From contig JAWQFM010000019.1 in the NCBI GenBank assembly GCA_033442325.1, forward strand, positions 760,823 through 824,822: 64,000 nt of DNA. Direction: 5' to 3'. Origin of the DNA: Salpingoeca rosetta (taxonomy: Eukaryota > Protista > Choanoflagellata). Every line of letters starts with the position of its first letter. The first letter of the stretch is position 1. Both the position numbers and the translations under genes were made by a program. Shown one piece after another: positions 13,049 to 23,708 of the stretch. The notes under the pieces were generated by a model. The model had not been told where the DNA came from, did no database searches, and saw nothing but the letters and a program-made list of their open reading frames with translations.

Positions 13049-13326
13049 ACTCTGTGTGTGTGTGTGCGTGAGTGTGCTGGCTCTATGTGTGTGTGTGTGT
13101 GTGCGTGTTTTGGACGGGTGGAAGCACCGTGTTGGGCACTAGGGTATGCGGAAGAGGGTCAAAGTTCATGGCTCACTCACGCCTGTGACGCTGTGTCTCC
13201 CTTTGGCCATGCATCAACACCCAGCCTCCAGACACAAGCATCAACCAGGGATCGGAAAGGGATCGCTCGCTCGCTGACTGCCTGCGCACCGGGCCTTGGA
13301 CAAGTTGTGGATCAGACGACACGACC

Positions 13327-15790
<2,464 letters not shown>

Positions 15791-18470: not shown

Positions 18471-18663
18471 ATGGACGGCCAGCAGCAGCCGGCACCGGCG
18501 CAACACGGTGCCCCTGACGCAGCCCTGCTCTCCCAGCTGCTCAGCCAACTCAACTCCACCGCATTCCCGCCAAGCAGCGCCGCAATGAACGGACAAGCAC
18601 AGGACGTCGTGCTTCTGCAATACCTTCAGGCCCTGGTGAACCAAGCCCAGCAGCAGCAGCAGC

Positions 18664-18709
<46 letters not shown>

Positions 18710-19151
18710 GCAGCAACAGCAACAACAACAACAACAGCCGCAGCCGCAGCCGCAGCCGTCGCAAGCGCATCAAGCCCAAGACCAGCACGGTCACGGTTTT
18801 CGGGTACAAGCACACGACCCCTCCTTGCAGAGCCAATTTGCGCAGTCAGGCGTGCCAGCAAATCAGAGCGATCATGCTCAGCTTCATCACCACCATCCCA
18901 CGCATAGAACGCAGCCCACACCAGGACCCTTTGCAGATGCGGCACTGGCCCCGCAATCCACAGCGGCAATGGCCCAACATGCTGGTCTGCAACCGCAGCA
19001 GCATCAACATCAACAACCACAACATCAACAATGCGCAAGGTGGCCGTCCTCATCACCGCCCCACTCACTCCCATCAAGCGTGTCGACGCAAGCTGGCCCG
19101 GCACAGTTGCTGGACTTTGGCACTTTCGGCTCGCAGCAGCCACAGCCACAA

Positions 19152-19189
<38 letters not shown>

Positions 19190-19883
19190 TTTGGACAGAC
19201 ACGCCAATCCCTTTGCCCTCCCTTTGTTGACGTCATCAGGGCCGTCGACAAAAGCGCCATCGCCGCCATCAACGCTGTTTCCGCTGACAGCAAACGTGCG
19301 TGATCTGGCAGATGCGCAGCGACAGGACGACGACCATCTTCGCTTTCTGCAACAGATGGCCATGACCAGCCCATCGCCCATGAACCAATTCAGCCACCAC
19401 CATCAGCCACAACAGCAGCAGCAACAAGCGCAACCCCCGCAACCCCAGCCTGTCACGGGCCACGCAAACTTCATGCACATGCAGCCGACCACACTCTTTG
19501 GCGGCCCCAGCGATGCTGGATGTGTGGCACAGCATCCGCTGCCAATGCCGCTCCCGATTCCCCTCGTCACCACGACGCCGGCCGCTCTCGTGTCGACCGT
19601 CGGGCACGTGCCCACGCTCATGCCCTCGATGCCGTTTGCCACAGGCTACTCCCACCACCACCACCACCAAACGTCGTTCTCGCCTGCAGGAGGCCTGGAT
19701 GCGCAGCACGGCGGCCACCGACGTGGAAATGGCCGACACGGCCGGCGGCCCCGAGGGGAGCCATCGGCTGAAGCGCACATCCGCCAAGTCTGCGAGGGTT
19801 GCGGAAGCGTCAACTACGTCACCAGGTATGCTAACATGCATAGTGTTGGCGTGGCGTGTGCTGTGTGGACAAGGCTTGCCACA

Positions 19884-19914
<31 letters not shown>

Positions 19915-20046
19915 CAAACAACAGACACACAGCTGACGATACCTTTTTCGTTTCGCTCAGATCTCATTCGTCACTTGCGATTTTTTTCCAACAGGGCTCC
20001 ACCAAAAGACAGGAAAATCATTTGCAAGCAATGCCGAAAGTCAGTA

Positions 20047-20091
<45 letters not shown>

Positions 20092-20446
20092 TTATCTGTG
20101 GTTGGTTGTATGATGGCTGGTGGGCGAGTCTGCTGAAGCTTTGATCCACCGTGTGTGTGTTCTGCATTTGGGTGGTTTGCCTCCCTTTTCGACTTTTCGT
20201 TTCGCCCACTTGCTCACTCATCACCACCACCACCACCCTCTCCTCTCTGTCACTTTCGTCGTGCTGTCTTGCTGCGTGAGCAGCAGCCTGCGCCCACGGG
20301 TGCAGCGCGTCTTCAAGAACATCAAGGCGCATGAATTCGCCGACTTCACCGTCAAGGACCTTGTGAAAGGTACGCCGTCGCTTGTGCTGCACTGCGACCG
20401 AGACATGTCCGACAGAGGGAGGGGAGGATGAGAGACAGACAGATAC

Positions 20447-20529
<83 letters not shown>

Positions 20530-21878
20530 TATTTGTAGAGTGAAACACGTTTGCATGTCTCGAAACGCGTCATGGCTTTCCCTGCTCTGCTCCTCTCACT
20601 GTGTTCCCGTGTCCACCTTTCTGTTAATCCATCTGCGTGTTTCACATTCCCATCCATCATCGCCCGCAACCACACATGCGCCCATACACGCAACTCCCTC
20701 ACCCGCGTGCACACTCTGACCCTGGCTCGCACCCTGACTCTGACGTGCGTTTTGCGTTTTTGTGTTCCAACAGCCATCACGGCCATGGCTGCCCCCTGCC
20801 CAACAGGCTTCAAGTGCCCCGTTGACATTTTCCAGAACCAAAAGTGTAGGTTGTCATGAAGCATAGATGCCCGCTCCCTTGCTCAAACCACCAATGCGAT
20901 CGGATTGCTCTGCTGTACCTTGATCATGGCGCCAAGCAAGTCCCTTTCATTCCTTTGTTTCGTCAGAGCTGTTGTCTGTCACTGCGCGCACGGATGTATA
21001 CATGTGTGCGATTCCTTCGTTTTGCTATGCCAAAAGAACCACACGAACTGCACCAACACTCACTCGTTCATCCCTCTCCGTCATCTGTGTGTGCTCTGCA
21101 TGCTCTGCATGTGTTTGCCTCTCCTTCAGCCCGCTGCGTCACCTGCCACGCCCTCCATTTCACCCGCGTCTTCCCCGACGAGACCGCTTCACGTGAGTGC
21201 TCACTTGTGTATGTGTGCGTGTGTGTGCGCGCGCGCAAGTGGGCGTGTGGTGGCTGTCTGGGCAAGCGCACATACGGGTGAATATGCAGGTGTGCATTTC
21301 TCGAACTGTTGTTCTCTGTGTGTTGTGCCATCACGAGCTCAGGTTTGGGCGCGGCTACCATCCCTTGTTCATGTCATCGACGGTTGCTCTCACGTCACCG
21401 TCACAGCACTTTAATCAATCAACACTTACCCATCAATCAAACTAACCCCACGACAAAACTCGCTGTTCCATCTAGTGCTGCGGGTGTTCAAGAAGCGCAT
21501 TTGTCGCTCCGTGGGGTGCCAGACAAACGGCCGACCGGAAAACGCTGTCGTGCGCGTGACCGATTTGTTCAAGAAGGACTCCAAACGCCGCCCAACATGC
21601 TTTGAGGTCGGCACCAGCACACCGGAAGAATGGGCCGATCTGCCTGCCCTCAGGGGAGGCGGCCGTGTGCAAGGCGGACAAGACGACAGCAGTGCACGCC
21701 CGTTGCCGCCAGCGCCGCTCTCGCCCACACCATCCTCGATGGAGCGCATGCTGTTTCCCTTCTCTGCGCAGGACGGCGACGGGCCCATGGATGACATTGT
21801 TGATGACGACGACTTTGCTGTTGACGACTTTGGTGGCGGTGGCGGCCGCGTCGATGTTGGTGATGACGATGGTGCCAG

Positions 21879-21909
<31 letters not shown>

Positions 21910-22202
21910 GGTGGTGGTGGTGGCGCTTGTGGTCTGGCTGACGTTGGTGGCCGCCGTGTCACTGCCACCAGTGCTGGAAGTGCCACAACCACAGGTCTCC
22001 TTGACCGCGGCATCTGCGACACAGACTCGGACGAGATGCTGGCCGTTCGCCTGCCCGGAGCAGACGCCGCCACGGGCACGAAGGGCACGGCACCGCGCTT
22101 CTCGCGTGCGGACGGATCTCGCTTGTCCGTGTCACCGCCACAGCGGCGATCTAGCGACACCAACACCAACATACTGCTGGCGGCGGTGCGGGACCTCATC
22201 CC

Positions 22203-22234
<32 letters not shown>

Positions 22235-22530
22235 GTGTCAATTTCAACAATGGCGACGATGATGGCAGCCGCCGCCGCGGTGACCGTTTCGTCAATGGCG
22301 AGCAGGTGGCCAAACGCGCCCGATACGCGAGCAGCGCCGGTGCGAACGTGGACGGCAGCCAAGCCATGGAGAACACGGTATTCAACGGGTACGAGCCACT
22401 GCTGCAGACACCAAGCGCGTCCACATCCATGCAGTTTGTCGGGCCTGACGCTGGCGGCGATGACGGCATTGTCGATGGTAAAGATACCGCTGACTTTATG
22501 GCGTCTGTCGACGCATCATCCAACCTCTGA
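18471..22530 (+). CDS. Uncharacterised ~890-aa polyQ/Pro-rich protein with two C4 zinc-finger modules; putative transcription factor
   Basis: Six phase-consistent GT-AG exons: 18471-19825, 19995-20039, 20287-20369, 20774-20845, 21130-21192, 21476-22530 (2673 nt, divisible by 3). Core: CEGC-x17-CKQC...CPTGFKC-x11-CVTC. Q-rich N-terminus, acidic D/G-rich C-terminus. Confidence 0.75.
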
Positions 22531-22571
22531 CGACTTTATGGCGTCTGTCGACGCATCATCCAACCTCTGAC
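22492..22571 (+). repeat. Perfect 40-bp tandem duplication spanning the stop codon
   Basis: gactttatggcgtctgtcgacgcatcatccaacctctgac occurs twice in tandem (22492-22531 and 22532-22571). Confidence 0.95.
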
Positions 22572-23708
22572 GGCGACTCAAGCATGGCTGCTGGGTCGCT
22601 GAACGCTGTTGCTGCTTGTTATGTTACACCTTTTTCGCTCCTTCGCTGTTGCTTCGCTGCTGTTACCGTGAGGTGCTTGATTCCTGCATCCGTGTGTTTG
22701 GAAAACGAGCCAAAGCATTCCTTGTTCTCTTCTCCCCTTATCTTCTTCATGCAGTGCATTGAATGGCGCGGGGCTGTGTTGTGTTGTGCTTCACATCAAC
22801 TTTTGTAGTGGGATTTGGTGTCGCTTCTTTTGGTTTTGCTTCTTGTCTTGATTTGCGTTTCGCATTTTGTTGAAGACGGGGCCATGTCCTGGCTGATCAT
22901 GGATCTATGACGATGCAGACCGGACCGTGATGCCACCGCTCGTTTTCAGCTCATGTCTGCACCCCATTGTCTGACGGGTTTTGGGTTTGCATTCTGAGCA
23001 CGTGCCCCATGCCCGCCATGCCATGTGCCCCATGCCGAAACGCAATGTCATGCATGGGTCCATCGGATTGTGCTGCCTTCTGCCTTCGCTCTCGCCGCTG
23101 CTCTTCGTTTTTCTTTTTTGTTTGTTTTGTTCCATCTCTATTCCCATCCATACGCTGACTTTGGCTTGCCCTTGCTGCCAGCATGTGTTGGTTGGTTGGT
23201 GTGCGTGTTTATTTCTATATCTGAAGACCCACGGCGCGCGCCCCACACATGTTATGTTGGCTTGCTCTCTGCCACTGCTGTCGTTTCCTGTGTGTCTTGT
23301 GCTGTTTCCCTGTTTCCTTGTGACCTGTTACGCCTACGTCACGGTGCCACAAACCCTTTTCTTCCTCCTCGCGCTCGCTCCCAAGGTGGTGGCTGCGCGG
23401 ATGCGTCACATGGCACGTCATGCCACGCGTGACGTCACGTGGTTGTGTCATGCATGGTTGGTTGGTTGGTGCTTGGCCACTGTGTTCATTGTGTCTCAAC
23501 ATGTAACACCAACATAAAAACATCATTTTCCACCACCACAACGGTCGGGTGCCTTGCAGAATCGCATACACAACAATCAAGAGCGAGCAACACGAGAGAG
23601 AGAGACAGAGAGGGGAGACGCTGGGAAGAGGGTGAGCGATAAGCAAACAAGCAAGAAAACGAATGAATGAACAAACAAAGAGAGGCGCGCACCGATAAGC
23701 CTGAGCTG

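Follow-up and report, generated by a model that had tools for sequence, protein, structure and literature searches.

The 64,000-nucleotide window analysed here comes from the choanoflagellate Salpingoeca rosetta (assembly GCA_033442325.1, contig JAWQFM010000019.1, positions 760,823 to 824,822), is intron-bearing and has a GC content of ~55%. On its + strand, at 18471-22530, it holds a gene of six exons whose predicted product carries a block rich in Cys and His between two low-complexity arms. On balance, this single-copy gene of ~890 codons appears to encode a regulator belonging to a new, narrowly distributed and unclassified zinc-domain family. The original prediction, made from the letters alone, had described a spliced double C4 zinc finger and offered two readings of it: a divergent relative of the nuclear-receptor DNA-binding domain (DBD), or a zinc-finger family that is new and specific to its lineage, with flanks like those of transcription factors. 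The latter fits everything found, as there are no family matches, no paralogue and a single homologue. The former gained no support.

Three-frame translation combined with the reading of splice signals gave the following exons, joined by GT-AG introns. A slash marks a splice junction, and P0001 and L002 are the protein and the contig of the homologue described below.

18471-19825, + strand: exon 1, with ATG at 18471, the first Cys pair (CEGC) near the 3' end and donor cag/GTATGC; placed from its open frame, composition and tail translation.
19995-20039, + strand: exon 2 (45 nt), with the second Cys pair (CKQC), acceptor ttttttccaacag/ and donor aaa/GTCAGT; placed from splice signals and frame only.
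20284-20369, + strand: exon 3 (86 nt, or 83 nt with acceptor 20287), basic linker (S)LRPRVQRVFK...FADFTVKDLVK; 61% identity to L002:173-256, with equal length and phase.
20774-20845, + strand: exon 4, third Cys pair PCPTGFKC (C-x5-C); 50% identity to L002:382-447, with both Cys kept and equal intron phases.
21130-21192, + strand: exon 5 (63 nt), fourth Cys pair followed by two His, RCVTCHALHF.R.FPDE; 75% identity to L002:915-974, with equal exon length.
21476-21622, + strand: head of exon 6, L.VFKKRICR.VGCQ ... FKKD.KRRPTC, strongly basic, with three further conserved Cys; 52% identity over ~48 residues to P0001/L002:1212-1352.
21623-22530, + strand: remainder of exon 6, an acidic, Gly/Asp-rich low-complexity tail with the stop codon at 22528-22530; placed from composition, and unlike the tail of the homologue.
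22492-22572, + strand: perfect 40-bp tandem duplication (2.0 copies, 100% match) that spans the stop codon.

The five introns, of 169-404 nt, are all GT-AG, and their acceptors are rich in pyrimidines. In total the exons comprise 2673 nt in a single frame, or 890 codons (891 with acceptor 20284). Introns 1-5 split the codons ag/g (R), aa/c (N), g/cc (A), t/cc (S) and c/tg (L). Translated exon by exon, exon 1 ends in QVCEGCGSVNYVT, exon 2 reads APPKDRKIICKQCR, exon 3 LRPRVQRVFKNIKAHEFADFTVKDLVK, exon 4 ITAMAAPCPTGFKCPVDIFQNQK and exon 5 RCVTCHALHFTRVFPDETAS, and exon 6 starts with LRVFKKRICRSVGCQ. Together with the split codons, this reproduces the six-exon splice peptide and the Cys spacing of the original prediction as one 2673-nt frame. 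A donor at 20844 was considered for exon 4 and discarded, since its use would disrupt both the frame and the conserved RCVTCH reading.

A homologue exists. Among 1.84 billion representative proteins, the sole HMMER match of exon 6 was P0001, a protein of 315 amino acids (E 5.4e-5) with 52% identity over the first ~49 residues. Two Logan contigs of nearly the same sequence encode it (runs SRR14727189 and SRR14727191). The contig used for comparison, L002, is 2526 bp long and unspliced. Both are AT-rich, with a GC content of 31-39% in introns and ~42% in exons. L002 (2150-2526) ends in 15 A, ~375 nt past the stop codon, and because of this terminal run the contig may represent a transcript that was polyadenylated but not spliced, instead of genomic DNA. 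It holds counterparts of exons 3-6, collinear and on one strand.

L002:173-256: counterpart of exon 3, 61% identity, tblastn E 2.4e-10.
L002:382-447: counterpart of exon 4, 50% identity, tblastn E 2.1e-5.
L002:915-974: counterpart of exon 5, 75% identity, tblastn E 3.0e-10.
L002:1212-1352: counterpart of the exon 6 head, 52% identity, tblastn E 1.5e-14.

The positions and phases of introns 3-5 are identical between the S. rosetta gene and L002. Exon lengths in S. rosetta and L002 are 86 and 86 nt for exon 3, 72 and 69 nt for exon 4, and 63 and 63 nt for exon 5. At the DNA level the similarity is restricted to exons, and the introns do not align. The collinearity, the shared intron positions and phases and the exon-only DNA similarity are strong evidence that exons 3-6 exist as predicted, that they are joined correctly and that purifying selection acts on them. 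Judged by this comparison, the gene is real, for exons 3-6 at least.

The homologue keeps every Cys of exons 4-6 (seven, Cys 5-8 among them) and both His. The shared residues are (S)LRPR.QRVFK ... FA..T.KDLV in exon 3, PCPT.F.C..D.FQ in exon 4, RCVTCHALHF.R.FPDE in exon 5 (the first ten identical) and L.VFKKRICR.VGCQ ... FKKD.KRRPTC in exon 6. The spacer between Cys 6 and Cys 7 is x10 in the homologue where S. rosetta has x11, and PVD is replaced by SPD. The C-terminal tails of the two proteins are unrelated. By these alignments it is the Cys/His-rich block that is conserved as a unit, and not the arms of low complexity.

The first eight Cys are spaced C-x2-C-x17-C-x2-C-x37-C-x5-C-x11-C-x2-C. 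The long spacer depends on the acceptor of exon 3, a tandem cag/cag (20284 or 20287), where the upstream choice inserts one Ser and turns x37 into x38. The homologue favours acceptor 20284, because this form of exon 3 matches its own in length and sequence; the x37 that was originally predicted holds with acceptor 20287 and becomes x38 with the favoured one. A tandem NAG-NAG acceptor is found at exon 3 in both species, as cag/cag at 20281-20289 and as cag/tag at L002:166-175. Depending on which of the two is used, the stretch from the second Cys pair to the basic linker of exon 3, which is probably helical, would be longer or shorter by one Ser. The basic segment predicted to follow the first finger is present as the LRPRVQR stretch of exon 3, and exon 3 as a whole is 61% identical in L002.

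The predicted eight Cys are all present, but the conserved block does not end with them. Past the eighth Cys it continues as CH-x2-H in exon 5 and as C-x4-C-x26-C within the first 41 residues of exon 6, adding two His and three Cys. Cys 1-4 together with the two His and seven Cys of exons 4-6 make 13 candidate ligands. These would suffice for three zinc sites, and by this count three zinc ions are probably bound. The Cys clustering exceeds chance, since 11 of the 15 Cys of the protein fall in ~163 of its 890 residues. The block is basic (32 K+R vs 14 D+E). The introns within the domain (19826-21475) each separate ligand pairs, with one Cys/His knuckle per small exon, and because every intron falls between ligand pairs, no putative zinc site lies within a single exon.

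The flanks are as the original prediction had them. The N-terminal ~425 residues are low-complexity and rich in Gln, Pro and His (24% Gln); beyond them lie a basic segment and the first Cys pair. The C-terminal tail has 59 Asp or Glu among its last 302 residues (20%).

This layout suggests how the protein could work. Selection would act only on the central block of ~160 residues, which is basic and has 11 Cys and at least two conserved His. It would bind three zinc ions: one at a C4 site formed by exons 1-2, one at a site from exons 4-5, and one at a Cys/His site from exons 5-6. The block would contact nucleic acid or chromatin, the Gln-rich N-terminus and acidic C-terminus would recruit the transcription machinery, and the whole protein would act as a sequence-specific nuclear regulator. 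That the block binds zinc, and at three sites, and that the protein is nuclear, binds DNA and affects transcription is suggested by composition and conservation.

Several points weigh against this proposal. Flanks that are Gln-rich or acidic are common among S. rosetta proteins and are no proof of transcription-factor function. Basic Cys/His-rich modules can equally serve to bind proteins or RNA, and the family is known from two members only. The evidence for exons 1-2, for the junctions 1-2 and 2-3 and for Cys 1-4 consists solely of splice consensus and frame. This last point would also be expected if the 5' half of the gene model were wrong, or the locus not expressed as modelled, and the first finger were an artefact of splicing by hand. 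L002 agrees with such an error in so far as it starts 171 nt upstream of exon 3, leaving the 5' end with Cys 1-4 outside the contig, and these 171 nt contain nothing resembling exon 2 or the exon 1 tail. In favour of the 45-nt exon 2, however, are its strong polypyrimidine acceptor, its GT donor and the exactness with which it restores the frame between exon 1, of 452 codons, and exon 3, which is conserved. A faulty 5' half is therefore considered very improbable.

Family, profile and database searches were run exon by exon, with every putative zinc site split by an intron. Pfam at E<=10 detected no significant family on any exon. Among 5.8 billion clustered proteins, queries with the exon 1 open frame or exon 6 found no homologue, nor the S. 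rosetta protein itself, and P0001 as a query found P0001 alone; its 90% cluster has one member. Per-exon profiles against PDB sequences gave chance matches only (BamA, the CPTGFKC of tubulin, the CxxCHAL of PsbV), and in the ESM atlas the head of exon 6 had no usable match. Metagenome contigs contained no match to the protein pattern or to a degenerate DNA pattern for RCVTCHALHF, and in viral contigs the protein pattern and the RCVTCHALHF DNA pattern were both empty as well.

No paralogue was found in the S. rosetta genome either (55.4 Mb in 68 contigs), searched in six frames with the exon 1 tail, exon 3, an exon 4 profile, exon 5 and the exon 6 head. These searches returned the locus itself and one noise match (E 1.4). 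By these searches the gene is single-copy in S. rosetta. Other Cys/His modules, namely THAP, TAZ, integrase-HHCC, ZZ and HNH, were compared and rejected: in each case the spacing of the ligands does not fit or a His that the module needs is absent, and Pfam is silent.

Exon-sized searches could conceal known domains, and the block may instead be a composite of known zinc modules that such searches fail to recognise, used mainly for protein-protein or chromatin binding and not for sequence-specific DNA binding. One such composite would join a C-x2-C-x17-C-x2-C treble clef of GATA/XPA type, or a zinc ribbon, to a downstream cross-brace resembling that of RING/PHD (C2-C2-H2-C2). GATA and XPA fingers both have the spacing C-x2-C-x17-C-x2-C, which is also that of the first two Cys pairs here (x2, x17, x2), and in all of them a basic stretch follows. 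A sub-threshold Pfam match to Zn_ribbon_Nudix covers CEGCGSVNYV (E 0.098). Further downstream, exons 4-6 supply C-x5-C-x11-C-x2-C-H-x2-H-x21-C-x4-C, that is, the four consecutive ligand pairs (C2, C2, H2, C2) that a cross-brace requires.

The details of both halves argue against a composite. Cys 1-4 have the C-x2-C-x17..18-C-x2-C spacing of GATA (PF00320), but T-x-L-W-R-R and C-N-A-C-G, with its N-A-C, are absent. The signatures of XPA are missing too, and a finger of either type would cover one of the three putative sites. Unlike in RING or PHD domains, C-x2-C and H-x2-H adjoin without a gap between the second and third pairs, and the knuckles are C-x5-C and C-x4-C. No piece matches a Pfam family significantly. 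A composite of known modules is therefore thought unlikely, and an unclassified zinc domain is preferred.

The likeness to nuclear receptors was assessed separately. Nuclear-receptor DBDs have the spacing C-x2-C-x13-C-x2-C-x15..17-C-x5-C-x9-C-x2-C, with the signature HYG in finger 1, CEGCKGFF(R/K)R at Cys 3-4 and RNxCQxCRxxKC at Cys 7-8. The S. rosetta block likewise has eight Cys in four pairs, with C-x2-C and C-x5-C ... C-x2-C as in the receptor fingers and a basic segment after the second pair. The letters CPVD and RC of NR4A finger 2 also coincide with those of the S. rosetta gene. The agreement that had been predicted for finger 2 (C-x5-CPVD...RC-x2-C) is borne out for the Cys pairs, which the homologue keeps, but not for PVD, which reads SPD there.

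Beyond these similarities the two diverge. Three of the seven Cys spacers depart from the receptor pattern (x17, x37-38 and x11 vs x13, x15-17 and x9). By inspection the receptor signature residues are absent: CEGC is the first pair here and not the second, Cys 3-4 read CKQCRN(S)LRPR and Cys 7-8 RCVTCHALHF, and there is no HYG, FFRR or P-box context of the CEGCKGFF type. After the eighth Cys come two His and three Cys, all conserved, which is more than a two-zinc DBD uses. The 350 residues of exon 6 contain no Pfam family, hence no ligand-binding domain (Hormone_recep), and their tail is acidic and of low complexity. The caveats of the original prediction about longer spacers, missing HYG and FFRR and a missing ligand-binding domain were thus justified.

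The zf-C4 profile (PF00105), which had been proposed as a check, matched no exon translation at E<=10, with each finger split by an intron. Run in six frames over the whole genome at the same E<=10, it did not return the locus either. It did return two matches on other contigs, of 24.1 and 16.8 bits, which lack required Cys and look non-coding. The stronger one, at C31:210311-210472 (L004:1501-1662), has a genome E of 0.0026 and lies just above the Pfam gathering cut-off of 21.1 bits. It contains FLRRS and RC....LQDCL, two of its zf-C4 Cys seem to be substituted in a hand alignment, and it is flanked by poly-Leu and poly-Glu and looks non-coding. This match is probably spurious or a relic. A DNA pattern for receptor-like Cys spacing was swamped by (TGT)n microsatellites across the genome and was uninformative.

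The literature bears on the premise that nuclear receptors are specific to metazoans. Receptors were stated to be absent from choanoflagellate genomes (Bridgham et al. 2010, PMC2950128), in agreement with it. On the other side, stand-alone zf-C4 Pfam hits were reported in some choanoflagellates and the DBD was concluded to predate animals (Lopez-Escardo et al. 2019, PMC6792448); the zf-C4 proteins are not listed in the supplement of that paper.

Because of the spacers, the signatures, the change of PVD to SPD, the missing ligand-binding domain and the extra His and Cys, membership of the nuclear receptors is not supported, and on the sequence comparisons made here neither is kinship with them. 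A looser relation would be structural: the domain could be a divergent, insertion-bearing relative of the receptor DBD, built of two C4 modules of treble-clef type with a helix after each. The arrangement of Cys pairs, the basic segment and the choanoflagellate zf-C4 hits of Lopez-Escardo et al. 2019 (PMC6792448) speak for it. The differing spacers and missing P-box, the silence of PF00105, the surplus ligands and the lack of a paralogue by any exon speak against it, and such a relation is decidedly unlikely. The more specific proposal that the ~160-residue module is a loop-expanded form of the two-zinc receptor-type fold that gained a third Cys/His site is strongly doubted. If true, it would move the origin of receptor DBD architecture before animals. 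It would not have been the first claim of a pre-animal DBD, because choanoflagellate zf-C4 was already reported by Lopez-Escardo et al. 2019 (PMC6792448), and those stand-alone hits are better candidates for a receptor-like DBD of that age. The present evidence leaves the view of nuclear receptors as an animal invention unchanged.

A last alternative concerns the metal. CVTCH (window 21135-21149), kept in the homologue, formally fits the c-type haem attachment motif CXXCH, and Cys-Pro dipeptides, of which exon 4 has some, could be haem-regulatory motifs; the protein would then bind haem rather than zinc. A 15-residue match of the exon 5 profile to cytochrome c549/PsbV takes in CxxCHAL (E 0.022), but this E is not significant and came from a profile of 20 columns. 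Nothing around CVTCH resembles a cytochrome fold, the Pfam scan of the exons found no cytochrome family, and a single CP is conserved in the homologue. For haem to be attached covalently, a protein has to be exported into the periplasm or the intermembrane space of mitochondria, and the 425-residue Gln-rich N-terminus is by its appearance unlike a targeting signal. The likeness to PsbV was judged a coincidence and haem binding extremely improbable.

As an unclassified domain, the block adds to S. rosetta, a genetically manipulable organism, a conserved and putatively multi-zinc module with a transcription-factor-like layout.

Some smaller features of the locus were also recorded. Introns 1, 2 and 3 contain the microsatellites (AG)16 at 19883-19914, (TG)20 at 20050-20089 and (AGAC)24 at 20433-20529, respectively. 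The 40-bp duplication at 22492-22572 places a second copy of the stop and of the 12 codons before it directly after the gene. Upstream, on the + strand, an open frame at 13296-13994 has a sub-threshold match to CDP-alcohol phosphatidyltransferase (20.7 bits vs a cut-off of 22) and is probably an exon of a neighbouring gene.

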